From positions 124,001-188,000 of the IMG/VR virus record IMGVR_UViG_3300028416_000004: 64,000 nucleotides of DNA. One strand, 5' to 3'. Positions 9,673-63,666 of this stretch are shown here, in pieces; position 1 is the stretch's first letter; every line of letters starts with the position of its first letter. The position numbers and the translations under genes are program-made. The notes under the pieces are model-generated. The model did no database searches. It saw only the letters and a list, made by a program, of their open reading frames with translations, and had not been told where the DNA came from.

Positions 9673-9747
9673 GGCCCATTCGTCTAGTGGTTAGGACGCC
9701 AGGTTTTCATCCTGGAAACAGGAGTTCGATTCTCCTATGGGCTACCA
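9673..9747 (+). tRNA. tRNA-Glu(TTC)
   Basis: Cloverleaf GGCCCAT/ATGGGCT, anticodon arm CCAGG-TTTTCAT-CCTGG, GTTCGA T-loop, encoded CCA. Confidence 0.95.
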
Positions 9748-9821
9748 GGTCTGGTAGTTCAGATGGTTAGAATATCTGCCTGTCACGCAGAGGGTCGTGA
9801 GTTCGAATCTCATCCAGACCG
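9748..9821 (+). tRNA. tRNA-Asp(GTC)
   Basis: GGTCTGG/CCAGACC acceptor stem, TCTGC-CTGTCAC-GCAGA anticodon arm, GTTCGAA; no encoded CCA. Confidence 0.95.
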
Positions 9822-9826
9822 CAAAA

Positions 9827-9899
9827 TGACCTATGGTGTAACTGGTAACACATCTGATTTTGGTTCAGAAGAGTCTAGGTTCGAAACCTAGTAGGTCAA
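9827..9899 (+). tRNA. tRNA-Gln(TTG)
   Basis: TGACCTA/TAGGTCA acceptor with U1:A72, TCTGA-TTTTGGT-TCAGA anticodon arm, GGTTCGAA. Confidence 0.95.
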
Positions 9900-9900
9900 C

Positions 9901-15027: not shown

Positions 15028-16503
15028 TTAATATTTTTTAAACTCAAATTTAGCTTTTCCACAATCCCATATTCTATCATAACCTAATTCTTGCATCATT
15101 TGCCATTCTGTTTTATTTTTATCATATATTTCTGGGAATTTTTTTGATATTTTATTTTTTCCAAATAAAAATTTATGAAATCTATTATATTTTGAAACTT
15201 TAGAATTATAATATGTGTAATCTGGATTTATTACTTTTTTCAATTTGAAATCATTTTTAGCATAAACATTATTTTCTTTATCAAAATTCCATCTTAAGTC
15301 TAAAAAAGTAAAAAGATTATTAAATTCATAATTATTTGAAATAAAATAAATAAATTTAGAAAATATTCCAACTACATTATAATTAATATCTGAAGCAAAT
15401 CTTTTTATTTCATAATTTTCATCTTTTATTTTTGAAACCATATTTCTTTTGTTAGATAAAGTAATAACAGAAACTAATTTACCTTCATATAAAGCTCCTA
15501 GTTTTATTTCACTTTTATCATTGCCTTGTATATGATTTTTTTCTAAAAAAATCCCTTTTTCTTTTGATGTTATCTCTTTTATAATACATTTTCTAGCAAA
15601 AATCGATGGCTTATTTTTAGTTTTTAAGATATTTTTTATTTTCTCTTTTACAATATTATTTTTCAAAAACCATTCATCTTCAAAAATATGAATTAATTTA
15701 TAGCCTTTTTTAAAACATATTTCAGATTTACTTAAATGAAAATTTCTATTTTTTTTGCCATAATTTTCTGAATGATAAAGATTTCCATTGAATTCTATAC
15801 AAATTTTTTTGTCTGGTATTATTATATCTATTTCCATACCATTAAAAATTTTTCTATTGTTTTTTAATATTTTTAAATTTAAGTCATTTTCTAAAAAATA
15901 TTTTAATTCTAATTCTGGTTTTGAAACAAAAGTTTTTTCTATTTTTTGAGAAGCTTTTTTTAAAATTTCACCTGCTTTATCTTTAAAAGAACTACTTGCA
16001 TATTGTTCTTTTGGAAATCTTAATTTATATGTTTCAAGGTTTAAATTGTGTTTTTTTAAATGTGTATTTGTTAAATATCTTACTTTTTTATTACATATTT
16101 TACAAGTAACAAAATTACCTTCTTTTATAGTTTCTAAATTTTTTTCTTTATTTTTTATAAAAGTTTTAAATTTTATAGATTCTTCTGGGAAATCTTTTAA
16201 ATATTCTTCGATGTTTTTGTTGTGCACTTTCTTTAAATGTAAAGTATATTGTCCACTTGAATTTTCTATATCTAATGTGTTCCAATTACAATATTTACAT
16301 TTGAATTTATTTTTTTCTTCCTTTTCTATTAAATCAAAATATTTAAAATGCCAATATTCTCCTTTTTCTTTTAAATATTTCCTTCTTTTATAAGAAGATT
16401 CAACTTTGATAGATAGAGTTTTTAAATGATTAGTAATACAACCACTTTTATTTTCTATATCATTAAATTCTTTTTGTGTTATTTTGCAAATTAAAACTTT
16501 CAT
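15028..16503 (-). mobile_element. Free-standing Hef-like homing endonuclease gene (zinc fingers + PD-(D/E)XK/Vsr-like nuclease + C-terminal domain)
   Basis: CKYC..HLKKVH and CKIC..HLKKH fingers; EIDIIIPDKKICIEFNGNLYH nuclease motif; IHIFEDEW; FARKC...NHIQG...RIWDCG tail. Very Lys/AT-rich and inserted after the capsid terminator. Confidence 0.7.
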
Positions 16504-16632: not shown

Positions 16633-18192
16633 TTAGTTATAAACTTGTTGGTAAGTGTTGATGTTATCGATTGAAATAACTCCGTAGAAACGGTTGTTAA
16701 CCATCTTCTTAGCGTAACGAGTCATAATTCCTTTTCTAGGAGTGAAATCGTTAGGGTCATAGATAGTTTGTGTTAATTGCAACGGAATGTACGGTGCATA
16801 AACATAACCAGCTTCTAAGAAAGTATCTCCTTTATGTCCACAAAGAACGATGTTTGCAGGCATATAAGGGTCTTTATAAACAACATATCTGTTTCCTAAG
16901 TTACCGATTTTCTCGATACCTAAGTTATATTTTTCAGCTTCTGGCTGAGCAGAACCATCTACGTGGAAGTATTCTAAATCATCAAAGATAGCACCAGCTT
17001 CAGCAGAACAGATAATCCAGTTAGCACCACCTCTTAAAGTAGCTTTGTGGATTTGAGCTGAAATTTCGTTTACTTTAGTGATTAAAGTTTGGTTCCAGTC
17101 TTTTTGAGTACCAAAGAAGTTTGCATTGTTTCTTAAACCAGCATAATCCCATCTAGCTTCGAACATTGCCCCATTGATAAGGTCTCTAATAATCTCTCTA
17201 TCGATTTCAGCAGCTACCTCTTCTGATAATAAAGCTGTCAATTCAGCTTCAGCATCAATACTGTGGTAAGCTTCTAAATCTTGAGCTAATTCTGGAGTCC
17301 AGTGAGCTCTCATTTTTCTTGTAATAGTATTTACTGTTACAGAAGAGAATCTAATTGTTAACTCACTCATTTCTGATTTAGCTTCTAAGTCATTGAATAC
17401 TTCATAAGCAGGAATAACAGTAAAGTCAGCTAATAATGAAGCATCAAAATCTGCACCATAAACACCAGCAGGTCTTACATCTAAAATAACTTTAGCTTGT
17501 TGACCAGAAAATTGGTCTTGACCCCAAGTTTGTAATTGAGAGTAATATTTAACGCTATCACCAGCAGCGAAAACTTCAGCTCCATCATATTCAACAGCTG
17601 TTACAGCAGAGAATCTTAAAGTTGAGCTTGATTGTTGTTTGTTAACATCAAATTGAGAACCTAAAGCAAAAGTAACTTCAACTAAACCATCAACAGTATT
17701 ACCTGAACCTAAAGTTTGTTGAGTACCATTTGCAGTTGCACCAGTTCCAAAAGAAGCAGCTTGACCTCTGTTGTCATAAAATCTTTCGTAAGCAGAATTT
17801 CCATCAAAAGTTGAACCAGCTTGACCGTTTGCTGTATTAGCAGGAGCAACTTTATCAGTTGATACTCTAGCATCCATATAGAATAACAATCCTGAAGGAA
17901 GTGCTAATGGTTGTACAGATACGATTTCGTTTGCCAATAATCTAGAGAAAATTCTTCTAACCATTGGGAATGCTACAGTGTCAAAACGACCTGCAGATGA
18001 ATCAAGTGTCACCTCATTTAACATGTGAGACGCTTGGTTTTCTAATAATTGAGCAATGTTTGATTTTTTTGCACCGTTAAGACCTTCTAAAAGTCCTGAC
18101 TTGTCCCAGTTTCCAACGATTTCTCTTCTTTGTTCTGAAAGACTTCTTAAGTTTGTTAAACCAACATTACCGCTGTTTAATAATTCACTCAT
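16633..18192 (-). CDS. Major capsid protein (T4 gp23-like)
   Basis: W.KSGLLEGL, LLENQA, VSVQP...PSGLLF, RKMRAHWTPELAQDL, EIDREII, YAPYIPL, PRKGIMTRY. Confidence 0.97.
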   Translation of the reverse strand: MSELLNSGNVGLTNLRSLSEQRREIVGNWDKSGLLEGLNGAKKSNIAQLLENQASHMLNEVTLDSSAGRFDTVAFPMVRRIFSRLLANEIVSVQPLALPSGLLFYMDARVSTDKVAPANTANGQAGSTFDGNSAYERFYDNRGQAASFGTGATANGTQQTLGSGNTVDGLVEVTFALGSQFDVNKQQSSSTLRFSAVTAVEYDGAEVFAAGDSVKYYSQLQTWGQDQFSGQQAKVILDVRPAGVYGADFDASLLADFTVIPAYEVFNDLEAKSEMSELTIRFSSVTVNTITRKMRAHWTPELAQDLEAYHSIDAEAELTALLSEEVAAEIDREIIRDLINGAMFEARWDYAGLRNNANFFGTQKDWNQTLITKVNEISAQIHKATLRGGANWIICSAEAGAIFDDLEYFHVDGSAQPEAEKYNLGIEKIGNLGNRYVVYKDPYMPANIVLCGHKGDTFLEAGYVYAPYIPLQLTQTIYDPNDFTPRKGIMTRYAKKMVNNRFYGVISIDNINTYQQVYN

Positions 18193-18221: not shown

Positions 18222-19658
18222 TTAAGAATTCAAGGTTTTATTAATACCAGCAAGAAGTTTCATTCTAGCAACTTCTTTATTCTCGTATAATGCTTCTGTT
18301 TTAGTAACAGGAGTAATAGACGGGCTAGTAGACTTTAATTTGCTTTTTAATTGTTCAGTTTTTTCATTTGATAAATTAGTACTTTCACTAATAATTTTGT
18401 TGTAAAGCGTTTTAGCTTCTTCGACAGTATTTGTCTCATCAAAATTTTCAGCAATTTTAACTTTTTCATCATTTGTCAAACCTCCCTTTGAGAACAATTT
18501 GTTAACATATGCTAACTTTGCATTAAAAGTTTGAACCTCGTTAATTTGTTTTCTAAGTACTTTGAAAGATTCTTTGTACTCTTTTAGGGATTCTTTTAAA
18601 CTTTCGTTTTCCTCTGTGAGCTCAGCTATTTTAGCTTCATTATGAGCGTTATTTTCGTGTAAAGGAGCTATTGGTGAATGGTGTCCTTGTGCTTTTGTTT
18701 TGTTCCCAAAAGCTCTTTGAACTCCATGTCCGACTCCCATAACTTCTTCTAATTCTTCTTCAGTTTCGATATCTAAAATATCTTCATCACCTTCTTCATT
18801 ATCTTTTGGTAAAATACCTGCTAAAATGTCTTCAATTTCTTTTTCAGAAACTTCTTCATCTTCATCTACCACTTCAATTTCTTCTAAGTATTCTTCAGAA
18901 ACTACTTCTTCTTCTGTTTCAGGAGCTTCTGTAGCTTCATCATCAGTTATCTCTATTTCAACTTCACCTTCAGCTGCTGGATTTTCTTCTGATTTTTCAC
19001 TTGCCACTTCTTCTTCTTCTTGAGCTGCTTCTATATTTTCTTGTGGTTGTTCTAATTTAGAAAGAATTGCATCTAATTTTGAACTTAATTGTTCGATAGC
19101 AGATTTAGTAGGAACTTCTACTGTTTGAGAATCTTCTTCAGTATCTAAATCTCCTTCTACTGGAGCTTCTTCTACTGGAGCTTCTTCTACTGGAGCTTCT
19201 TCTACTGGTGCTTCTTCTACTGGTGCTTCTTCTATTTCTTCTTCAAAAAGATTTACTTCAAACAATTCTTCATCCTCATCTTCATCATCTTCTTCAGATT
19301 CAAATTCTTCTTTTTCTGTTTCATCTTCTTCTTTAGATTCGATTTCTTCTTCAGAATCAATTCCTTCCTCTTCTTCGTCAGTAGGTATAATGTTTAAATC
19401 GTCTTCCTCTGCATCTACTTTAATAGAAGTTACTCCATCTTCAACGCTAACTGAAATATCAGCATCTCCAACTTCAATTTCAACACCTTCTTCGATAGTT
19501 TTATTTTCTAACTCCTCAAGAGCTTTTTTTACAGCCTCGTTCATTTTTGCAATAGTAGATTCTTCAACTACTTTTTTTGCACTGTTAATCGCTGCTTGTT
19601 CTATTTCTCTAGTTTCTAATAAAGCTTTTTCTAGAGATGTTTTGCTTTTTTCTGACAT
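18222..19658 (-). CDS. Prohead scaffold/core protein
   Basis: Extremely Glu-rich, coiled-coil C-terminus (NEVQTFNAKLAYVNKLF); lies between protease and capsid genes. Confidence 0.8.
   Translation of the reverse strand: MSEKSKTSLEKALLETREIEQAAINSAKKVVEESTIAKMNEAVKKALEELENKTIEEGVEIEVGDADISVSVEDGVTSIKVDAEEDDLNIIPTDEEEEGIDSEEEIESKEEDETEKEEFESEEDDEDEDEELFEVNLFEEEIEEAPVEEAPVEEAPVEEAPVEEAPVEGDLDTEEDSQTVEVPTKSAIEQLSSKLDAILSKLEQPQENIEAAQEEEEVASEKSEENPAAEGEVEIEITDDEATEAPETEEEVVSEEYLEEIEVVDEDEEVSEKEIEDILAGILPKDNEEGDEDILDIETEEELEEVMGVGHGVQRAFGNKTKAQGHHSPIAPLHENNAHNEAKIAELTEENESLKESLKEYKESFKVLRKQINEVQTFNAKLAYVNKLFSKGGLTNDEKVKIAENFDETNTVEEAKTLYNKIISESTNLSNEKTEQLKSKLKSTSPSITPVTKTEALYENKEVARMKLLAGINKTLNS
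19155..19232 (-). repeat. 15-bp tandem repeat encoding (EEAPV)5
   Basis: TTCTACTGG[AT]GCTTC x5 on the + strand. Confidence 0.9.
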
Positions 19659-19730
19659 TTTATTTTTTTTTACTTAAATGAAAGGTTTACGGATAAATAG
19701 TTTATAAAAAATTAAATTCCATTTAAAATG

Positions 19731-20375
19731 TTATTTTTTCCAAAAATCTTTTTTAGAAACTTTGAATAATTCTTTCATTGAATCATTAAAAGTATTCAAT
19801 TCATTTGGTTTTAATATTTTTGAACTATTACCATCTAATTTAGTCATCCCCCAGCTTTTTGACTCTTTAAATAAGTATGCACCAGGAGTAGAAGGAGAAG
19901 AAACAAAGTCGAAACCTATAAGTTCAAAATCTTCTTGAACAACATCGAGTCCATTTTTATTTTTTACAGAACCAACACCTCTTGAAGATATACCTAGCAT
20001 AACTCCACTTTTCAACAATCCTTTTAAAATGTTTCCAGAAGGAGTATCAAGTAATTTTACTTTACCCATTAAAGTTTCACCTTCCCACCACATTTCAGTA
20101 ACCATATGAGAAACATTAGACAAACTAACTACAGCACTATCTGGATGGTCTAATTCTCCAGTAGCTCTATTTTCTTTTACTGCTTCCTCATATTTTTTAG
20201 CTTCTCTTTTTAAAATATCTAATGGATAAACTCTTCCATTTCTATTTTCAGTATTAGCCTTTTGAAGAATACCAGTCATAAAGATTGGTTGATTTTTTTC
20301 TTCAGCTTCCTTTATTAAGGTAGAGTCTACTTCAAAAGTATAAAACTCTGATATTACATATTTATCTAAACTCAT
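19731..20375 (-). CDS. Prohead protease (T4 gp21-like)
   Basis: NRNGRVYP, GELDHP, VSH, GISSRGVGS, DFVSSPSTPGA. Confidence 0.95.
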   Translation of the reverse strand: MSLDKYVISEFYTFEVDSTLIKEAEEKNQPIFMTGILQKANTENRNGRVYPLDILKREAKKYEEAVKENRATGELDHPDSAVVSLSNVSHMVTEMWWEGETLMGKVKLLDTPSGNILKGLLKSGVMLGISSRGVGSVKNKNGLDVVQEDFELIGFDFVSSPSTPGAYLFKESKSWGMTKLDGNSSKILKPNELNTFNDSMKELFKVSKKDFWKK

Positions 20376-20452
20376 TTTTTTTTATTTATTATATAATAAT
20401 TAACATATATAAATATGATGAAAAAAAGTTTATTAATTTTTAATTAAAAAAC

Positions 20453-20483
20453 TTGTTTTAATTAAAAAAAAAATTTAAAATTG
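20453..20483 (+). promoter_or_regulatory. Bacteroidota-type host promoter (TTG-N20-TAAAATTG)
   Basis: TTG 20453-20455, 20-nt spacer, TAAAATTG 20476-20483. Confidence 0.4.
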
Positions 20484-20522
20484 TAAAGTGTAGCAGAAAT
20501 AAATTATTGTATAACTTAAAAA

Positions 20523-21098
20523 ATGAGAGAATGTAATGAATTAACTTTAGAAGACAAACAAACAAAAAGGACTGGGAAAGAGATTAAAATAGATGGAAGT
20601 CTTTTTGGGAATGATAAAATAAAATTTAAAATAGGAACTTGTTTTCAAAAACAAAGCCCAGAAACTATATATATAGAATTAGGTTTTTGGATAGATATAA
20701 AAGAAAAATATTATCAACATGAATCTGATAAATATTCTTTTTTAGATTATGATTATGAGATTTCTAAAAAATTGAAAAATTATATTAGAAGTATATATAG
20801 AGAAGATTTAAAAAGTTTTTTGTCAAATAATAAAATATTTCCCGCATATTTAGAAAATATATATGTTTATGATTTTCCTGAAAATGTAAATTATAATAAC
20901 AAAAGAAGTTTTGTTTCTATAGAATTAAATTTACATACATTAAATATGGAAAGTTTTAATGATAAAAATTACCCCTTATCTGAAAAAGGAGATAATACTT
21001 TATTAAATGAAGCTTTAAAGGTTTGTGAAATTATATCTAATTCTGATTTATTAAAAGATAAAACTGAATTTAGTGTACATAAATCTAAGAAGGATTAA
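20523..21098 (+). CDS. Hypothetical protein
   Basis: 191-aa ORF, divergent from the protease gene, followed by a terminator. Confidence 0.65.
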   Translation: MRECNELTLEDKQTKRTGKEIKIDGSLFGNDKIKFKIGTCFQKQSPETIYIELGFWIDIKEKYYQHESDKYSFLDYDYEISKKLKNYIRSIYREDLKSFLSNNKIFPAYLENIYVYDFPENVNYNNKRSFVSIELNLHTLNMESFNDKNYPLSEKGDNTLLNEALKVCEIISNSDLLKDKTEFSVHKSKKD

Positions 21099-21104
21099 AC
21101 AAAG

Positions 21105-21130
21105 AAAAGAGAGCATTGCTCTCTTTTTTT
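21105..21130. terminator. Bidirectional intrinsic terminator
   Basis: AAAAGAGAGCA-T-TGCTCTCTTTTTTT between convergent genes. Confidence 0.8.
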
Positions 21131-21133
21131 ATG

Positions 21134-21451
21134 TTATAGTTTAGGTTCAATTTTGGATTTTATTTCTTCTTTACTTTTAATTCCTACTAATTTATCATAG
21201 ACTTCTCCATCTTTAAAAAAAAGCATTGTAGGTATATTTCTAACTCCATAATCTCTAGCTATATCAGAATATAAATCTACATTTACTTTACTGATTATTG
21301 CTTTGTCTGATAATTCATTATGAATCTCATCTATTACTGGCCCTATCATTTTACAAGGATTACACCATTCCGCCCAAAAATCTACTAAAACAGGTTTATT
21401 AGATTTTAAAACTAACTCTTCAAAATTTTCTTTTGTTAATTCTAGTGCCAT
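21134..21451 (-). CDS. trxA: Thioredoxin
   Basis: VLVDFWAEWCNPCKMIGP, KVNVD, YGVRNIPT. Confidence 0.93.
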   Translation of the reverse strand: MALELTKENFEELVLKSNKPVLVDFWAEWCNPCKMIGPVIDEIHNELSDKAIISKVNVDLYSDIARDYGVRNIPTMLFFKDGEVYDKLVGIKSKEEIKSKIEPKL

Positions 21452-21513
21452 ATTTATAATACATTTAATTTATATAAAGATAATAAATAATAATTTATAA
21501 AACAAATTATTAA

Positions 21514-21918
21514 TTATAAACCAGTACTTCCTTCTCCTTTTTTCCAACCTTGTTTAGCTCTGATTGCGAAAAGTAATTGTCCCATTCTTTTTTTGTTTTT
21601 TTCTGGTACTTTTTTATCTTCTTCTTGAAATTTATCATTTTCTTTTTTAAGTTTTGCAACTTCTTTTTTAAGTTCTGAAATTGTCATATCTGAAAATTCA
21701 CCTGTACTTTTTATTTCAACATCACTTTCGAAAGATTCATTTTTATTTTGTTTATCCATCTCTATTGCAGATTCAATATTTTCTATCTCTTCTGGAGTTA
21801 ATTTAATTCCATTCATTTGTTCGATAGTTTTTAAAATATTTTCACTTTCTTTGAGATTTTTGAAAACATTAATTTCCTCTAATATAATTTCTCTTAGTCT
21901 GTTTTTGTTGATTTTCAT
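21514..21918 (-). CDS. Putative internal head protein
   Basis: Charged and helical; N-terminal KINKNRLREIILEE motif shared with neighbouring proteins. Confidence 0.5.
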   Translation of the reverse strand: MKINKNRLREIILEEINVFKNLKESENILKTIEQMNGIKLTPEEIENIESAIEMDKQNKNESFESDVEIKSTGEFSDMTISELKKEVAKLKKENDKFQEEDKKVPEKNKKRMGQLLFAIRAKQGWKKGEGSTGL

Positions 21919-21923
21919 AACTA

Positions 21924-22736
21924 TTAAATTTGGTTTAATATATCATTTATTTCAGCACAATTTATAATAATTTCATCAACATTTTTAGAATTTATTTCTT
22001 CAATAGATTCTAATTTGTTTTTAAAATTCTCTAAAAAACTTTCACCCTCTTCCAGAATAATACCATCAATTAAAGAAAGACTTTCACTTTTTAAATCATT
22101 AGCATATTTTATTTTTATATCATCAGAAGAAATTAATACTTTAAATAATTTTTTGTCAGATTCATTTAAATGTCTATACCTTTTATTAAAATTACTTACA
22201 GCATGTTCATTTACATATCTCCAAGATAAAAATTTAGGCATATCATTCAAATCTTCTTCTAATTTATTTTCATTAGAAACATTTCTTTGTAAATGAGATA
22301 AAATATGCTCATAAGATTCATGAGATTTATTTATGTTTGAAAAAGATAAGTTACTTCTCGATTCAATTAAAGTATGAATTGATTCATATAATTCATCATA
22401 TCCATTAGAAGCAGATACGAAGTGTTCATCTAAGATTTCTTTTCTTAATTTTTTGTTTACTTCTAATAACTTATTCCAATCTAACTTTTCAGATAGAGAA
22501 AGATTTTCATTTATATATCTCTCAGCTAATCTCTCATTTTCAAAGTGTCCTTTTGTAAGATTTTCAAAAATCATATATTGAACTCTTAAAATAGGTTCTT
22601 CTTTTAATTTTTTAATAAATTTATTTAAAGAGTTTTTATTATTAGAATCTTTATTCGATTCATTTACCAACTCTCTACAAGATAATTTGTATACAGTATC
22701 TCTTAAAGCACCAAAATTTAAGCTAATTTTTTCCAT
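21924..22736 (-). CDS. Hypothetical helical protein, possibly head assembly
   Basis: 270 aa helical protein with FNKRY..LNE..K motif; late-type motif upstream; head-gene region. Confidence 0.5.
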   Translation of the reverse strand: MEKISLNFGALRDTVYKLSCRELVNESNKDSNNKNSLNKFIKKLKEEPILRVQYMIFENLTKGHFENERLAERYINENLSLSEKLDWNKLLEVNKKLRKEILDEHFVSASNGYDELYESIHTLIESRSNLSFSNINKSHESYEHILSHLQRNVSNENKLEEDLNDMPKFLSWRYVNEHAVSNFNKRYRHLNESDKKLFKVLISSDDIKIKYANDLKSESLSLIDGIILEEGESFLENFKNKLESIEEINSKNVDEIIINCAEINDILNQI

Positions 22737-22770
22737 TTTATATATTTTTTAAATAAATATGAAAGAAATT

Positions 22771-24003
22771 TTAATTTACAGCTACTTCACTTTTTTCTTT
22801 GTGTAATTTCAAATAGCTTTCAACTCTACTTTTCGTTACATTTTTCAAGTCATATTTTTCTTTTACGAAATTATGTAGATTTTCTGAAATTCTTTTTACT
22901 TCTTCTGGGTTGTTAATAAGTTTTTTGATATTTTTATACCAATCTTTATGATTTCTATTATCTTTAACTAAGAAACCATTTTCACCATCTTCAATTAATT
23001 CTTTGTAAACCCCAAAATCTTGAGCAATTAAAACTTTTTTTGTCATTCCAGCCTCAATTATTTTAAGTTCAGATTTGACTTCATTAAATTTATTATGAAC
23101 TAAAGGAGCTAAACAAACATCACAAAAACTATAATGTTTACCATATTGAGTTAATGGCAAAGTCCATCTTCTAACATAATTCAATTTAGAATAATCTTCT
23201 GGATATTTTTCATTTTTAAATTCACTTAAAAACTTTCTATAATCTTCATCAACTATTTTGTAATCACTTGTAAAAATTTTTTCAAAACGATTCCAAACAC
23301 TTTCTTCTGGTTTTATTTTTCTTGTCTTTTTTTGACCAGTTTGTTGATTAATTTCTGTAATGTGACCTCTAGTATCAAAACCACATAAAATAATTTGATA
23401 TTTATCTTTTAAAGAATCGTCTGAATTTAATTTTGCCATAGAAGTTTCCATTAACTTCAAATCTTCTAAATGAGATGAACCACCAATCCAAGAAACTCTA
23501 AGTTTATCAAATTTTTCGGCTGTCTCATCTTGTTTCCACATTTTATGTTCTGAATCAATAGCATTAGGCATAACAATCACATTTTTGTTATATTTAGCTA
23601 TTTCTTTAGCAAAAATATCTGTTGTAGTTGTTACATAATCAGATTTTTTGATAGTTTTAATAATTTTTTCCTCTATATTTTCACTTTTTGCAGCATGATA
23701 CATAGGATGTGTAGTTGGAGGAGACCAATAATCATCAATATCCATAATCATAGTTACACCAGCAGATTTTAAGGTATCAAAAATTTCATCAATTCTTTCT
23801 ATTGGTCCAAAGTGTCTATGAAAGTGTATGATATCATATTTTTTTAAAGATTCTAAATCATTAAAATTAGGACTTAAATCAATTTTAACTTCAAAAGAGT
23901 CTTTATATTTTCTTTGAATTTCTTGTGCAGGCCAAATAGACCTAAAGTGCCCAACTCCAGCCAAATCTGAAGGTTGAAATAATATTTTTATTTTATCAGA
24001 CAT
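22771..24003 (-). CDS. Glycosyltransferase (GT-B, GT4-like)
   Basis: GVGHFRSIWP, DIDDYW, WIGGSSHLEDL, DVCLAPL..NKFNEVKSELKIIEAG, DGENGFLV. Confidence 0.85.
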   Translation of the reverse strand: MSDKIKILFQPSDLAGVGHFRSIWPAQEIQRKYKDSFEVKIDLSPNFNDLESLKKYDIIHFHRHFGPIERIDEIFDTLKSAGVTMIMDIDDYWSPPTTHPMYHAAKSENIEEKIIKTIKKSDYVTTTTDIFAKEIAKYNKNVIVMPNAIDSEHKMWKQDETAEKFDKLRVSWIGGSSHLEDLKLMETSMAKLNSDDSLKDKYQIILCGFDTRGHITEINQQTGQKKTRKIKPEESVWNRFEKIFTSDYKIVDEDYRKFLSEFKNEKYPEDYSKLNYVRRWTLPLTQYGKHYSFCDVCLAPLVHNKFNEVKSELKIIEAGMTKKVLIAQDFGVYKELIEDGENGFLVKDNRNHKDWYKNIKKLINNPEEVKRISENLHNFVKEKYDLKNVTKSRVESYLKLHKEKSEVAVN

Positions 24004-24006
24004 ATA

Positions 24007-24351
24007 TTATGAATTTTCGTTATTTATATATTTATCTGCTGCTTCAGCAGCTTTTTCAAAATCAGATTTTTCTTTATTTTCTTCTTCAGAGTTTATTTTT
24101 TTTAATAAAGTTTCTAGGTGTTTTTCTGAATAATTTTTAACAAATTCTAATTCTAATTTAGAATTATCGAATTCTCTATCTACAGAAATAAAACCTCTTC
24201 TTTCTTGTGCATCTAAAGAGGCAGTTAATTGTGCTTCAGAAATGCAAAATTCACCTGGATTTAAAATAATTCCTTTTGAGTGCATTGATGCAGTTTTACA
24301 TGCAACTTTTACATGTTCTTTTGAGTTGTTAGTAATTTTCCAAACTTTCAT
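24007..24351 (-). CDS. Hypothetical protein
   Basis: 114-aa ORF immediately upstream of the glycosyltransferase. Confidence 0.6.
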   Translation of the reverse strand: MKVWKITNNSKEHVKVACKTASMHSKGIILNPGEFCISEAQLTASLDAQERRGFISVDREFDNSKLELEFVKNYSEKHLETLLKKINSEEENKEKSDFEKAAEAADKYINNENS

Positions 24352-24409
24352 AGTTAATTATATTTTTAGTTCAAAATAGTAATTAATTATTAAAAGTAAA
24401 TGATAAATA

Positions 24410-24916
24410 TTATTGATTTTTATTTGAAATTTTTAAAGAATTAAAAATGTTATCTATGATTTCATTTTTAAATAACTCCAAATCTTTAGAAGAATGTTTA
24501 GAATTTAAATTAAACCTACTTATAATTCCTTTAAAGTTTATTGAAGCAACTGTATTTGAGTCATTTGAAAATTGTACAGTTAAAACTAAATCAAAGTTTT
24601 CATCTATTGGTTTTTCTTCAAAAATACCATTTATATTAATGTTTATAAATAAAGAATTTGAATTTATTTTTGTTGAGCTTTTTAAAAGTTTTAGATTTAG
24701 TGATTTATCTTTTTCAATTTCATCATCAATACTAGTTAATATGTCAGAACCTAAATTTAACAGGTAGTCTTCTGAGAACCAACCTAAAGTATCCTTATCG
24801 CTTCTACCTGTATCAGACTTAAGTTCAATATTATCTTCTTTTAATATTCCAGATAAAAATTTGATTCTATTTTTGTAAGATTCACTAATCATTTTATTGA
24901 ATATATTTTTTGACAA
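24410..24916 (-). CDS. Putative internal head protein
   Basis: N-terminal ISESYKNRIKFLSGILKE resembles the scaffold C-terminal RMKLLAGI motif. Confidence 0.5.
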   Translation of the reverse strand: MSKNIFNKMISESYKNRIKFLSGILKEDNIELKSDTGRSDKDTLGWFSEDYLLNLGSDILTSIDDEIEKDKSLNLKLLKSSTKINSNSLFINININGIFEEKPIDENFDLVLTVQFSNDSNTVASINFKGIISRFNLNSKHSSKDLELFKNEIIDNIFNSLKISNKNQ

Positions 24917-25772
24917 TTTCCTCTATTCTTTTGCTTAAAATCATATCATAATGATTTTCTTCTTCTACATCATTATGTAAACTATTTTCTTCTGAATTTA
25001 AATTTTCATTTGAATTATCTATCATAGGTTGAGTTACATCTTTTACAGGTTCAATAGAATCTTTCATATTACTTTGACTATCTAACTCAATATCACTTAA
25101 CTCTAAATCGTCTTCTTTATTTTCTAATATATCTTCTATGAATTCAGTATTACCTTCGAATGGGTCAAATTCTAATTTTCCTATTTTTTCAAATTTAACA
25201 ATATATAATTCTGCTTCTTTAACTCCTTTGTTTAACCAAATATCTTTCATATTTGTTTTTTCTTCAGGATTTTCAAGTGTTTTAAGGTCTATACTAGAAA
25301 GTTTTTCAGAACCTACAGAAATTTCATTTTCATCAAAAATAAATAATTTTTCACTTTCTAATTTTTTTAATTGTTTTGGAATTTCTGGATGATGTTTTAA
25401 TTCTTCTTCTTTAGATAATAAAATAGTTTCTTTATCATTAAGTTCTAATTCTTTTTTTGATAATTCTTCTTCTTTTCTTTTTAGTTCTTCTTCTCTTTTT
25501 AAAATATCTTCCATCTCCTTAGAGGTTTCTAAGGTAGAAGTTATAGATTCTGGAACTTTTCCTTCTTCATCTTTAGGTTTAGAAATATCAATATTTAAAA
25601 CTTTTTCTTCATTGTTTTCATTATCTATTTTTTTACCTTCTTTAGATTTATTTTTAATTTTTTCTGTTATGTTTTTTATTACCTCTTCTTTTATTTCATC
25701 TGTAGAAGCTCCTTTTTCTAAAAATTTACTTCTAATCATCTCTTCTAATTCTGAAACAGTTATTTTTTCCAT
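24894..25772 (-). CDS. Acidic coiled-coil protein, putative head protein
   Basis: ORF track start is 25790; ATG 25772 (MEKITVSELEEMIR) is the more likely start. E/K-rich. Confidence 0.55.
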   Translation of the reverse strand: MEKITVSELEEMIRSKFLEKGASTDEIKEEVIKNITEKIKNKSKEGKKIDNENNEEKVLNIDISKPKDEEGKVPESITSTLETSKEMEDILKREEELKRKEEELSKKELELNDKETILLSKEEELKHHPEIPKQLKKLESEKLFIFDENEISVGSEKLSSIDLKTLENPEEKTNMKDIWLNKGVKEAELYIVKFEKIGKLEFDPFEGNTEFIEDILENKEDDLELSDIELDSQSNMKDSIEPVKDVTQPMIDNSNENLNSEENSLHNDVEEENHYDMILSKRIEEIVKKYIQ

Positions 25773-25881
25773 AATACTTTTATAAAACATTTAATAATAA
25801 ATATTAAATAAAATTAAGTTATTAGTTACAAAGAATAAAATAATACTTATATTTATAATATAATAAACTAATATAAATTAT

Positions 25882-26598
25882 ATGTCAACTAAAAAAAATT
25901 CAAAATCAACAAAAGGTAGAGGAAATGATACTAAACAATTTTTAAAAAATATAATAGGAGAAATACATTTTAAATCTAAAAATCAGAAACAGCAAGAATT
26001 TTATGATTTAATGCATAATAAAGAAATTGTAATATGTACAGGTCCTGCAGGAGTTGGAAAGTCTTATTTGACTGCTTTAAAGGCTTTAGAATTATTAGCT
26101 TCTTCAGAGAATGAATATTACAAAATAGTTATAACTACACCTGCAGTTGAAGCAGATGAAAAGTTAGGTTTTTTACCAGGTGATATATTAGAAAAAATGT
26201 CTCCATATACTTATTCAACAATTTATCTATTAGAAAAAATTATTGGCAAACAAAATGTTAAAGCCTTAATGGATTCTGAACATATTCAGATTATGCCTTT
26301 AGCATATATGAGAGGTATAAATATAGATAATTCAATATTAATAGCAGAAGAATTTCAAAACTCCACAAAAAGACAGACTAAAACTTTATTAACAAGGATA
26401 GGTTGGAAAAGTAAGTTTATAATCTCTGGAGATTTAGAACAATCAGATAGGTATAAAAACACATTAGATACTGGTTTATATGATGCTTTGAATAGATTTA
26501 AAAATATATCTGAAATAGGTACTATTTCATTTGAAGAAACTGATGTTGTAAGAAATCCAGTAATTCAAAAAATATTAGATACATATAAAAATGAATAA
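25882..26598 (+). CDS. phoH: PhoH-family ATPase
   Basis: GPAGVGKSY, EKLGFLPG, PLAYMRG, EEFQN, LLTRIG, GDLEQSD, DVVRNP. Confidence 0.93.
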   Translation: MSTKKNSKSTKGRGNDTKQFLKNIIGEIHFKSKNQKQQEFYDLMHNKEIVICTGPAGVGKSYLTALKALELLASSENEYYKIVITTPAVEADEKLGFLPGDILEKMSPYTYSTIYLLEKIIGKQNVKALMDSEHIQIMPLAYMRGINIDNSILIAEEFQNSTKRQTKTLLTRIGWKSKFIISGDLEQSDRYKNTLDTGLYDALNRFKNISEIGTISFEETDVVRNPVIQKILDTYKNE

Positions 26599-26629
26599 TT
26601 TTTTATATTTATAAATAAAAACAGAAATT

Positions 26630-26845
26630 ATGATTGTACAAAAGATGAAATGCCCTCATGGTTGCGAAAACACAACTTTTTTAGAAAGTGTAAAATCTGT
26701 TAATTCGTCTAATAATAATCTTCTATTAGATTCACAAAAGGGAAATGTAAATAATGTTCAAAAAGTAAAAGTATATACTTGCAATTGTTGTCACAATTCT
26801 TTTGAGATAAAAGAAGGTATTAATTCTGGTAGGATGATTTTATAA
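26630..26845 (+). CDS. Small zinc-ribbon protein
   Basis: CPHGC ... YTCNCC. Confidence 0.6.
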   Translation: MIVQKMKCPHGCENTTFLESVKSVNSSNNNLLLDSQKGNVNNVQKVKVYTCNCCHNSFEIKEGINSGRMIL

Positions 26846-26862
26846 AAAAGTTCTAAAAAAAT

Positions 26863-26895
26863 AAAAAACCCTCAAGTTATCTTGAGGGTTTTTTT
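26863..26895. terminator. Bidirectional intrinsic terminator
   Basis: AAAAAACCCTCAAG-TTAT-CTTGAGGGTTTTTTT. Confidence 0.85.
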
Positions 26896-26914
26896 GTATT
26901 ATTGATATTAAATA

Positions 26915-27484
26915 TTATTCCTTAATTAAACCAGCTAATTTTTTCATTCTAGACTGTTCTTCAGTAAGAATATTTTCTGTATTGTTTTTTGATTCAGAAA
27001 CTACTTCTTCATCTTCACACATTTCTTCTTCTTCAGAAACTTCTTCTTTTTCAGAAACTTCTTCTTCTTCTTCGCAAACTTCTTCCTTTTCAGAAACTAC
27101 TTCTTCTTCTTCCATAGTTCCACATTCTTCTAAATCTTCATCTTCTTCAGACATGATTTCAGCTAACATTTCTTCTAAAGTTTTCTCTTCTTCATCTTCC
27201 ATTTTTTCTGACATCATTTCCATCATATCTTCTTCTTCAGAAATTTCTTCTCCAAATTCTTCTTCTTCTTCTTTTAAAGCTGGGAAACCTCCATCTTTGC
27301 TTAATTCTTCAAATTCTGGCTTATACTTTTTTGTCCCATCAGGTAATTCATGCATATCACCAGCTTCAACTTCAGCAAGTTGAGCTTCAATTTCAGCAAG
27401 TTTAGATTCTAATTGTAGCTTTTTTTTGAATTTTAAAGCTTCCTCTTTAATAATTTGTGTTAATTCTGATTTTGTAATTTTCAT
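26915..27484 (-). CDS. Highly acidic putative prohead core/internal protein
   Basis: MKITKSELTQIIKEE N-terminus, poly-Glu repeats, C-terminal RMKKLAGLIKE. Confidence 0.6.
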   Translation of the reverse strand: MKITKSELTQIIKEEALKFKKKLQLESKLAEIEAQLAEVEAGDMHELPDGTKKYKPEFEELSKDGGFPALKEEEEEFGEEISEEEDMMEMMSEKMEDEEEKTLEEMLAEIMSEEDEDLEECGTMEEEEVVSEKEEVCEEEEEVSEKEEVSEEEEMCEDEEVVSESKNNTENILTEEQSRMKKLAGLIKE

Positions 27485-27503
27485 TTTTTTGTTATTTTAA
27501 TTA

Positions 27504-27899
27504 TTATTTGTCAGCTTTTTTCATTTCTGATATAAATGCTGTAATTTCTTCTATTTGCTTTTTTAAATTTTTATTTTCTTTTTTTAACTCATCTATTTCA
27601 TTTAACTCATCTTCATTGATTGTAGAAGCTTCTTCAATTTCATCTTGTTTAGCAAATTCTTTTTCTAATTGAGCTATATAAGAAATGTTTGGAGTATCAA
27701 CAAATCCAGACACACTTTTATCTTTATTGTCTCCTTGAAATCCAAAAGTTCCAACAAAATCTCTATTTTCATAAAGATTTTTAATTTCTTCATTGATTTG
27801 AGTTACTTTTTTATAGTACTCTTCTTTTTTAAGAATAAATTCTGCTTCCTCTTTTATAAGGTTAAGAATATTTGATTTGTTTAATTTTTTACTGTTCAT
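27504..27899 (-). CDS. Putative internal head protein
   Basis: KLNKSNILNLIKEE N-terminus; coiled coil; late-type motif upstream. Confidence 0.5.
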   Translation of the reverse strand: MNSKKLNKSNILNLIKEEAEFILKKEEYYKKVTQINEEIKNLYENRDFVGTFGFQGDNKDKSVSGFVDTPNISYIAQLEKEFAKQDEIEEASTINEDELNEIDELKKENKNLKKQIEEITAFISEMKKADK

Positions 27900-28031
27900 T
27901 TTAAATTATATTTAATAATTTTATAATTTTTAAAAATAAATAGCTGAAAAAAAAGTTTTTTACACTTTTCATTTATTTTTAATAAAAAAAATGTATATTG
28001 CTTAATATAAGAAATAATACAATTCATAAAT

Positions 28032-62979: not shown

Positions 62980-63666
62980 TTATAATCCAAATCTTCCTTT
63001 GGTTGTGTTATAATTTTGTAATACTTCACTATCTGTTAACGCTCTATTGTAAATTAAAGTATTACCAATTTTTTTATCACTAGCAACATAACTACCACCT
63101 GGATAACTATTAATAGATATACCTTGTGTTGTTTGTGCTTGACTACTAGAATTAGAAGACCCAAACAAAACTCCATTATGATATAGTGATACTGTAGATG
63201 TACCATTATAAGTACCAACTATATTGTGCCAATTACCATCTTCTAAATCTGTTTTTAATATTTTAGGGGTTGCAGTACCATAAAAAAACTGTATACCACT
63301 ATTCTCATAAAACCAGTATGTTCTAGAGTTAATACCTAAACCCTTACTTAATAAAACTTTATTATTAGATAATAAATTGAATTTAACCCACATAGAAACT
63401 GAAACAGAGATGGTATTTAAAGAATCTGAATTTGATATTGAAACATAATCATTCACACCATCAAATGACACAATTCCTCCATTATCAGTTAAGTATGTTA
63501 CACCATTGGTTAATGTACCATCATTATTATTTGATGTTAAATCATTCCAAATAGTACCTGTACCTGGATATGATAATGTATTTCCTGCATCTAAATGTAA
63601 CACTAACCCATCTGTTATTATATTTGATGTTTGTCTTGGTCTCACCCCTACTCTTGTTTGTGCCAT
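62980..63666 (-). CDS. LamG/concanavalin A-like lectin-domain virion protein
   Basis: GLVLHLDAG..SYPGTGT.W.DL, FDGVNDY, WHNIVGTY, IYNRALT..EV.QNY. Confidence 0.88.
   Translation of the reverse strand: MAQTRVGVRPRQTSNIITDGLVLHLDAGNTLSYPGTGTIWNDLTSNNNDGTLTNGVTYLTDNGGIVSFDGVNDYVSISNSDSLNTISVSVSMWVKFNLLSNNKVLLSKGLGINSRTYWFYENSGIQFFYGTATPKILKTDLEDGNWHNIVGTYNGTSTVSLYHNGVLFGSSNSSSQAQTTQGISINSYPGGSYVASDKKIGNTLIYNRALTDSEVLQNYNTTKGRFGL

Follow-up and report, generated by a model that had tools for sequence, protein, structure and literature searches.

Without a culture and a proteome, it is difficult to find out which proteins travel in the head of a phage and are injected into its host; in T4, the question is answered by a single signal of 10 residues, one that only close T-even relatives have. 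The same question is raised by the head-gene locus in a 64,000-nucleotide stretch of virus record IMGVR_UViG_3300028416_000004 (hereafter the window, which is the reverse complement of bases 53159-117158 of one 138,334-bp contig). Two short peptides, motifs A and B, had been noticed there in a sequence-only reading as shared by proteins encoded at 18222-27899, and had been taken for modular prohead-loading tags of ejected cargo. Having analyzed both peptides across the genome and its relatives, we put at roughly 0.6 the probability that they are portable, cleavable address tags by which proteins enter the prohead as it assembles.

To judge from its genes, the phage is a distant T4-type myovirus of the marine, far-T4 kind. 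The genome has a GC content of about 26% and was found in at least 14 seawater DNA runs and six seawater RNA libraries. Its nearest isolates are Flavobacterium phage immuto, Microcystis phage Mel-JY01 and Rhodothermus phage RM378, with capsid identities of 29-35% to immuto and RM378 over the full length and of 46% to Mel-JY01 over the 65% that aligned. Three head genes of the T4-type machinery are grouped on the minus strand, namely those for a gp23-like major capsid protein (16633..18192; Pfam Gp23, 3e-75, and an N-terminal alignment with T4 and far-T4 relatives), a gp22-like acidic scaffold with 31% E+D (18222..19658; recognized by its place between the protease and capsid genes, by its composition and by ends conserved in 70 relatives) and a gp21-like prohead protease (19731..20375; Pfam Peptidase_S77, 1.8e-33, with C-terminal tails compared). 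The genome also holds identified sheath and tube genes, as well as open reading frames (ORFs) of the size expected for portal and terminase.

Two short peptides at protein ends

The proteome used for all counts consisted of 152 non-overlapping ORFs (43,722 residues) called over the whole 138-kb genome, and chance expectations were taken from residue shuffles that preserve the composition of each protein. The seven peptides originally quoted for the two motifs were all found in their places. Motif B as first written, with three variable residues after [IL], has zero matches; its true form is K-[IL]-x4-[LI]-x2-[ILM]-I-x-[ES], which matches the four proteins quoted for it and two more outside the window. 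The strict form of motif A was observed 5 times against 0.003 expected, the loose form 7 times against 0.12, and the corrected motif B 6 times against 0.25. All of these matches lie within 25 residues of a protein end, zones that make up only 17% of the residues.

The consensus of the first peptide, tag A, is [IL]-S-E-x-Y-K-x-R-[MIL]-[KQ]-x-L-[AS]-G-[IL], a short basic amphipathic helix capped by L-A-G-I, and that of the second, tag B, is M-K-[IL]-[ST]-K-x-E-L-x-x-[IL]-I-[KR]-E-E, an N-terminal helix with a terminal I-x-E. Genome-wide, seven proteins carry tag A and seven carry tag B in its strict form, with B-like ends on up to 11; altogether, there are 13 strict carriers, or 17 when four B-like genes are added. 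Tag A is C-terminal in the scaffold, in 26915 (carriers in the window are named by the first coordinate of their genes), in a 181-aa protein and in a 322-aa protein, and N-terminal in 24410 and in the products of two adjacent genes outside the window.

Scanned across the genome much as had been proposed along with the motifs, profiles recovered every tag-A protein and all but two of the seven tag-B proteins. One built from 22 tag-A segments found exactly the seven tag-A proteins among the 152 ORFs and nothing else at E <1. In leave-one-out profiles, each tag-A protein was the top match outside the training set (six at E values from 3e-8 to 5e-4, the scaffold at 0.53); five tag-B proteins were found at E <0.001, 24894 was weak and 27504 was not recovered. 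The carriers had been described as otherwise unrelated, and this holds: in an all-against-all BLASTP comparison, the similarity between carriers is confined to the tags, and the N-terminal tag of 24410 is paired with the C-terminal tag of the 322-aa protein. The tag codons differ at synonymous sites, so that conservation is on the peptide level and not that of a DNA repeat; a DNA-level repeat or recombination signal was excluded on this ground. The motif strings were also sought in the literature, and no paper containing them was found.

Scaffold tails, relatives and tagged enzymes

The origin of tag A is indicated by the scaffold, where it forms a C-terminal module at 18237..18293 (minus strand) consisting of an L-Y-E site followed by R-M-K-L-L-A-G-I. 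We compared the surroundings of capsid-gene relatives at 80 IMG/VR loci. All scaffolds of the close clade (capsid 67-89% identical) end in L-[YF]-E-S-x-E-x-x-R-x-[KR]-x-L-A-G-I; in the distant clade (capsid 43-49% identical), the scaffold ends in L-x-E-S-x-x-Y-E-x-P-Q-x-x-R-M-K-D-L-M-x-K-I in at least 60 relatives; and [KR]-x-L-A-G-[IL] closes the scaffolds of immuto, Mel-JY01 and RM378. At least 70 relatives and three distant isolates thus have a scaffold whose extreme C-terminus is a conserved peptide; tag A is absent from the scaffolds (gp22) of T4 and cyanophage Syn19 and from that of a Variovorax phage. Tag A is thus an old scaffold tail found throughout the lineage.

The protease carries a related end. 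In the distant clade, it ends in the scaffold's own variant, D-R-M-K-K-L-M-G-x-L-D-x-F-L, and in the close clade only in a looser tail, K-[LM]-x-x-L-[AS]-x-N-x-F-W. The matching tails point to a peptide common to two core components that changes in step between the clades (L-A-G versus L-M). Tag A makes most sense, in our view, as a mimic of the scaffold tail, the best explanation being that it was copied, in the clade of this phage, onto the N- or C-termini of unrelated proteins. Such mimicry predicts a docking site shared with the scaffold tail, and this site is probably on the capsid protein. GenBank names the immuto scaffold (L089 4707-5948) a 'DNA polymerase phi-like protein', probably a mis-annotation due to low complexity; its gene is immediately upstream of that for the capsid protein, and its end is the scaffold tail.

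Whole-record searches of seven close-clade genomes with the tag-A profile gave further tag-A proteins in five, always at a protein end; one of the five, a fragment, has a sole extra match, which is weak, and the two 18%-complete fragments have the scaffold tag only. A complete 519-kb relative encodes at least 10 tag-A proteins, again always tagged at an end, a 372-kb relative has four further ones, a 222-kb relative has three further N-terminally A-tagged proteins and two more found by eye, and immuto has one besides the scaffold. Tag-B profiles gave 9, 5 and 1 N-terminal matches in the 222-kb relative, the 372-kb relative and immuto, respectively, and a 254-aa protein of the 372-kb relative has tag B at its start and tag A at its end, the same layout as in 26915. 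In five distant-clade genomes (38-76% complete), the L-A-G-I tag is absent, and the clade's own variant is found on the scaffold and the protease only.

Among 1.84 billion representative proteins, the tag-A profile gave 58 matches at E <=0.001, of which 23 are N-terminal, 20 are C-terminal (mostly scaffolds) and 15 are internal. Several of the internal matches are in proteins of more than 1000 aa or stand in tandem, in 2-4 copies and often right after a Met (P0190, P0193, P0203, P0217, P0184). These copies may be cleavable joints in polyvalent proteins, or they may come from gene calls that were run together.

The 322-aa tag-A protein contains a GH24 Phage_lysozyme domain (PF00959, 1.9e-19), and the likelier endolysin of this phage is a separate PG_binding + Amidase_2 protein encoded in the genome. 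An 836-aa protein with the B-like start M-N-I-R-N-I-I-R-E contains an ART-PolyVal domain (PF18760, 1e-8), so that two effector domains of polyvalent or injected proteins are present on carriers; the best global match to tag A, P0161, is another ART-PolyVal protein, and ART-PolyVal enzymes carry either tag A or a B-like tag. Among 120 homologues of the lysozyme, tag A is C-terminal in some and N-terminal in two, a B-like peptide stands at the N-terminus or the C-terminus of others, and some are fused to ART-PolyVal or GNAT domains; one contig encodes a B-tagged GNAT protein near an A-tagged lysozyme. This swapping of tags within a single enzyme family is, in our view, the strongest argument that both peptides are address labels for the same destination. 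Precedent for such cargo comes from T4 Alt, an ADP-ribosyltransferase that is packaged in the head and has its propeptides cleaved at both ends (PMC9026906), and from polyvalent lysozyme and ART proteins, which are predicted to be packaged in capsids (PMC5512222). An Atlas search with a 203-aa tag-A protein returned unnamed viral clusters only.

The likely ejected enzymes are encoded outside the window. Clustered at L128:83-2593:+ and L084:16245-19067, also outside the window, are genes for the 836-aa ART-PolyVal protein, a DUF5824 protein, a 206-aa protein and two tag-A proteins, all on the minus strand in window orientation and with copies of the motif [AC]TATTTAT upstream; we consider this cluster a candidate 'injected effector' cassette.

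Proposed address tags and their alternatives

The sequence patterns themselves, their terminal position, conservation and interchangeability, and the identity of the cargo domains are direct observations, and from them the following course of events can be proposed. Tag A on the carriers would dock at the site used by the scaffold tail, most likely on the inner face or the propeptide of the capsid protein. Tag B would work like the capsid targeting sequence (CTS) of T4, which consists of the first 10 residues of IPIII and directs proteins to the scaffolding core (PMC9026906, PMC3012670; for the CTS of IPI, IPII and IPIII, see Mullaney and Black 1996, as reviewed in the same papers). Once the shell has assembled, the tags would be severed by the S77 protease at the adjoining [LI]-x-E sites; enzymes such as the GH24 lysozyme and the ART-PolyVal protein would thereby come free within the head and be ejected with the DNA, and the acidic or coiled-coil carriers would be degraded like gp67 and gp68 of T4.

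The distribution of potential cleavage sites is consistent with this sequence of steps. The gp21 protease of T4 cuts after L/I-x-E (PMC9026906), and both gp21 and Alt are processed at their C-termini as well (PMC9026906, PMC3012670). In the capsid protein studied here, the predicted propeptide site M-L-N-E/V (the slash marks the cut) aligns with F-L-T-E/A of T4 gp23, and [LI]-x-E is found at this site in every far-T4 relative, which argues for conserved protease specificity. Scaffolds have a conserved L-Y-E or L-[SIN]-E 8-20 residues before the end, a predicted cleavage site between body and tail, and [LI]-x-E precedes the C-terminal copies of tag A at the same distance (L-Y-E, L-S-E, I-S-E and L-T-E). 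N-terminal copies are directly followed by G-I-[IL]-x-E, kept in 19 of 20 homologues of the 24410 family, and [LI]-x-E after the tag also occurs in most N-terminal tag-A matches worldwide. Tag B ends in I-[KRL]-E, the predicted L/I-x-E ending, in five of seven proteins, and in I-R-S or I-R-A in 24894 and 115828. More broadly, a two-tag address code might govern entry into the head across a large, mostly uncultured lineage of far-T4 phages whose hosts are marine and freshwater bacteria, with A as a scaffold-tail mimic and B as a CTS-like propeptide, both portable between termini and cargo families (lysozyme, ART-PolyVal, GNAT and unknown folds), and with the copies inside proteins of more than 1000 aa as cleavable joints; this generalization we hold tentatively, at somewhat short of even odds.

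Several points weigh against the address-tag interpretation. Binding, the docking partner, cleavage, packaging and ejection are all deduced from sequence, and a search for a virion proteome of the relatives found none. The number of internal proteins that would follow, 13-17, is large for a T4-like phage of 138 kb. Neither the T4 CTS (N-termini of IPII and IPIII) nor the scaffold N-terminus is significantly similar to motif B, so that this motif is linked to the head indirectly, by occurring together with A, by its place in the head module, by ending in I-x-E and by being swapped on lysozymes. Mimicry of the scaffold N-terminus was accordingly rejected for motif B as unsupported, given that a profile of 47 scaffold N-termini matches no tag-B protein and that the tag-B profile scores scaffold N-termini at no more than 8 bits; in T4 itself, the gp22 N-terminus, M-L-K-E-Q-L-I-A-E, visibly resembles the CTS (Y-Q-E-F-I-A-E). 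The tag-A gene of immuto is located among genes of nucleotide metabolism, the contrast between clades, with tags only where the scaffold ends in L-A-G-I, amounts to a single phylogenetic event, and the 15 of 58 global matches that are internal call for an extra assumption, either linker sites or fused gene calls. The B-like core [ILMFV]-x2-[ILM]-[IL]-[KRL]-[EAS], with 27 occurrences of which 13 are in the first 20 residues versus 1.9 expected, is a regular expression that was picked after the data had been seen. Finally, the many [LI]-x-E sites to which the sequence-only reading had drawn attention do exist (2.8 versus 1.35 per 100 residues, with the highest excess among carriers, z 3.5, in 27504), but the enrichment inside carriers is mostly compositional and adds little, and it was dropped as independent evidence.

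The carriers encoded in the window, all on the minus strand, bring up the alternative that survives best, in which the tagged proteins are only core or scaffold-accessory proteins of the prohead, the tags are scaffold-derived assembly helices that are later degraded, and nothing is delivered to the host. The 134-aa K/E-rich protein 21514 (21514..21918; tag B at 21859-21918) is a candidate core protein. The E/K-rich protein 24894, of about 292 aa (24894..25772), has a weak tag B at 25713-25772 (leave-one-out E 0.038); the second ATG of its gene (25772) is the probable start codon and would place motif B at residue 2. The 131-aa coiled-coil protein 27504 (27504..27899) has an offset, weak tag B at 27831-27893. 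The 189-aa, very acidic 26915 (26915..27484), with N-terminal tag B (27425-27484), an acidic run and C-terminal tag A (26921-26977), looks like a 'mini-scaffold', and tblastn against isolated phages gave no match to it. Pfam and PHROGs assigned no family to the small carriers. Being small, acidic or coiled-coil and located in the head module, these four tag-B carriers look more like core proteins of the gp67/gp68 type than like ejected cargo; gp67 of T4 is a small protein too, its tail acidic and its start similar to the CTS, and the restriction of the distant-clade tag to scaffold and protease points the same way.

However, tag A is also found on the GH24 lysozyme, on ART-PolyVal enzymes and on the globular 160-aa protein 24410, and B-like tags are found on ART-PolyVal and GNAT proteins, enzymes that are not scaffolding material. 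The gene for 24410 (24410..24892) encodes an N-terminal tag A at 24836-24892, followed by L-K-E. All 38 homologues in the databases are about 160 aa long and begin with M-I-x-E-S-Y; thus, the start is most likely the ATG at 24892 rather than the TTG at 24916, and tag A occupies residues 1-16. In an AlphaFold2 model of the family, which appears there as a conserved globular protein, the tag is a low-confidence helix on a linker of about 20 residues, detached from the fold; a Foldseek search of the model against the PDB gave no fold match. On balance, we regard an exclusive role in the core as unlikely, although it has a bearing on what had been proposed for this locus: the idea of modular, cleavable prohead-loading tags held up in all the comparative tests made and is strengthened by the scaffold tail, by the protease tail of the sister clade, by swapping and by the cargo enzymes, whereas ejected cargo is not what the tag-B carriers of the window resemble.

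The flanking [LI]-x-E sites are compatible with yet another explanation, namely, that the tags are docking or pro-sequence signals through which the S77 protease would activate or inactivate proteins, for instance a lysozyme and an ART kept silent before the cut, and that they have no influence on location. The cargo does include potentially self-harmful enzymes (lysozyme and ART), and T4 proteins are processed at both termini. But the protease of the sister clade bears the tag on its own C-terminus, the conservation of the scaffold tail far exceeds what a cleavage site needs, and gp21-type proteases are active only within proheads, so that cleavage would imply prior co-location with the protease; we therefore consider this explanation distinctly improbable. 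Least probable of all are generic amphipathic end helices arising from AT-rich composition, with roles in binding of lysis enzymes to the membrane or cell wall, in oligomerization or, through A-rich leader codons, in promoting translation. In their favour, some endolysins are known to have cationic helices at the C-terminus, the A-rich codons of M-K-I-x-K starts are of the sort common in strongly expressed genes of AT-rich genomes, and the [LI]-x-E excess is compositional, but composition-preserving shuffles yield 0.003 to 0.25 matches against the 5 to 7 observed, the tag matches the tails of scaffold and protease, some B-like tags are C-terminal, beyond the reach of any codon effect on initiation, and the genome encodes an amidase endolysin in addition to the lysozyme.

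Gene context and comparison with known systems

The carriers had been said mostly to carry late motifs. The T4 late promoter, TATAAATA, is not enriched upstream of genes and was discarded in favour of [AC]TATTTAT, which reads like the reverse complement of TATAAATA and occurs 12-50 nucleotides upstream of 48 of the 152 ORFs, against 12 for its own reverse complement, and is thus strand-specific. This motif, a candidate late promoter on the strength of its placement, precedes the sheath, tube, scaffold and protease genes. It is found before 8 of the 13 strict tag genes and before 11 of 17 tag or B-like genes versus 37 of 135 other ORFs (p = 0.003); four of the remaining tag carriers are second genes of units headed by the motif. 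The copy upstream of the scaffold gene is at 19693..19700 (minus strand); further minus-strand copies are at 20409-20416, 22753-22760, 24403-24410, 25797-25804 and 27936-27943, among the about 47 other sites in the genome.

In four assemblies of marine RNA libraries, the region 21.9-27.9 kb is covered, and in each of the four, a discrete contig of about 1 kb (26888-27899) spans exactly the pair 27504 + 26915, with a depth of 13-30, as compared with 2-9 for the pieces next to it. These depths hint at an abundant transcript; contig depth is weak evidence, as RNA-library contigs can neither prove transcription nor rank expression levels.

Other genes of the window surround or interrupt the head module. 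Within it are genes for a thioredoxin (21134-21451), a GT1 glycosyltransferase (22771-24003) and PhoH (25882-26598); from 28032 on, a GT2 glycosyltransferase gene is followed by a run of plus-strand ORFs. Adjoining the capsid gene, a 491-aa protein (15028-16503, minus strand) with repeated zinc-finger-like N-terminal units and a weak REase_MTES_1575 nuclease match, which has a counterpart beside the capsid gene in relative L008, is possibly a homing endonuclease. Three neighbouring tRNA genes at 9673-9900, for Glu (ttc), Asp (gtc) and Gln (ttg), fit the E/D-rich late proteins, among which 26915 is richer still in these residues than the scaffold (31% E+D). Paralogues of about 230 aa encoded at 62980-63666 (minus strand) and beyond the window all end in Q-N-Y-N-A-x-K-x-R-F-G-L, and duplicated proteins of about 735 aa have their first 13 residues in common; both sets are probably tail-fibre-like.

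If the address-tag interpretation is correct, the tags would allow the internal or ejected proteome of an uncultured lineage, with phages of up to 519 kb, to be predicted from sequence only, and would nominate candidate effectors of host takeover or anti-defence among familyless proteins. They would also point to the contact between scaffold and capsid in T4-type heads, which, to our knowledge, is not known. With a two-tag code, the injected proteome would become readable from genomes, and the tags could be used for loading foreign proteins into heads. The idea lends itself to a direct test in immuto, which can be cultured on Flavobacterium sp. LMO8 and has this scaffold tail (on immuto35A_203) as well as a single tagged gene (immuto35A_42).

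Among known systems, the T4 CTS is the closest in logic. Here as in T4, a short N-terminal peptide is attached to otherwise unrelated proteins (seven with strict tag B, three with N-terminal tag A) and ends at L/I-x-E, a gp21-type protease site, predicted here from sequence; the machinery is of the gp21/gp22/gp23 kind, and the cargo includes an ADP-ribosyltransferase, as in T4 Alt. The differences are substantial: the T4 sequence, M-K-T-Y-Q-E-F-I-A-E, is dissimilar to both tags and gives no sign of homology, tag B is longer (about 15 residues), there is a second, unrelated tag (A), the carriers are many more, and the tags would work at either terminus. The resemblance of tag B to the CTS is therefore one of logic, not of homology.

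Tag A has its parallels in scaffold and protease tails. The scaffold and protease of herpesviruses (UL26.5/UL26) share a C-terminal capsid-binding tail, the HK97 protease has a C-terminal targeting segment, and the P22 scaffold has a C-terminal coat-binding helix-turn-helix. Common to these and to the present system are a conserved extreme C-terminus of the scaffold, a protease with a similar tail (in the present system, clearly so in the distant clade) and a maturation site, here a predicted one, just upstream; what differs is that scaffold and protease are here encoded by separate genes and that the tail is copied onto unrelated enzymes, N-termini included. The cargo-loading peptides of encapsulins are likewise short, terminal and portable and direct diverse cargo into a shell of the HK97 fold. 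In the present case, however, the shell is a tailed-phage head with portal, scaffold and protease rather than an encapsulin, the tags are apparently removed by proteolysis, and there is no sequence relation.

The giant phages SPN3US and phiKZ have many head-internal, propeptide-bearing ejection proteins that are processed by a T4-type prohead protease (PMC5694885). Lysozyme and ART domains are found among the predicted injected effectors there as here (PMC5694885, PMC5512222), but we found no common short address motif defined for those ejection or polyvalent proteins (PMC5694885, PMC5512222), whereas in the phage studied here, the motifs are explicit and searchable. On the best reading of these comparisons, the system would combine CTS-like targeting with a capsid-binding tail of the scaffold/protease type.

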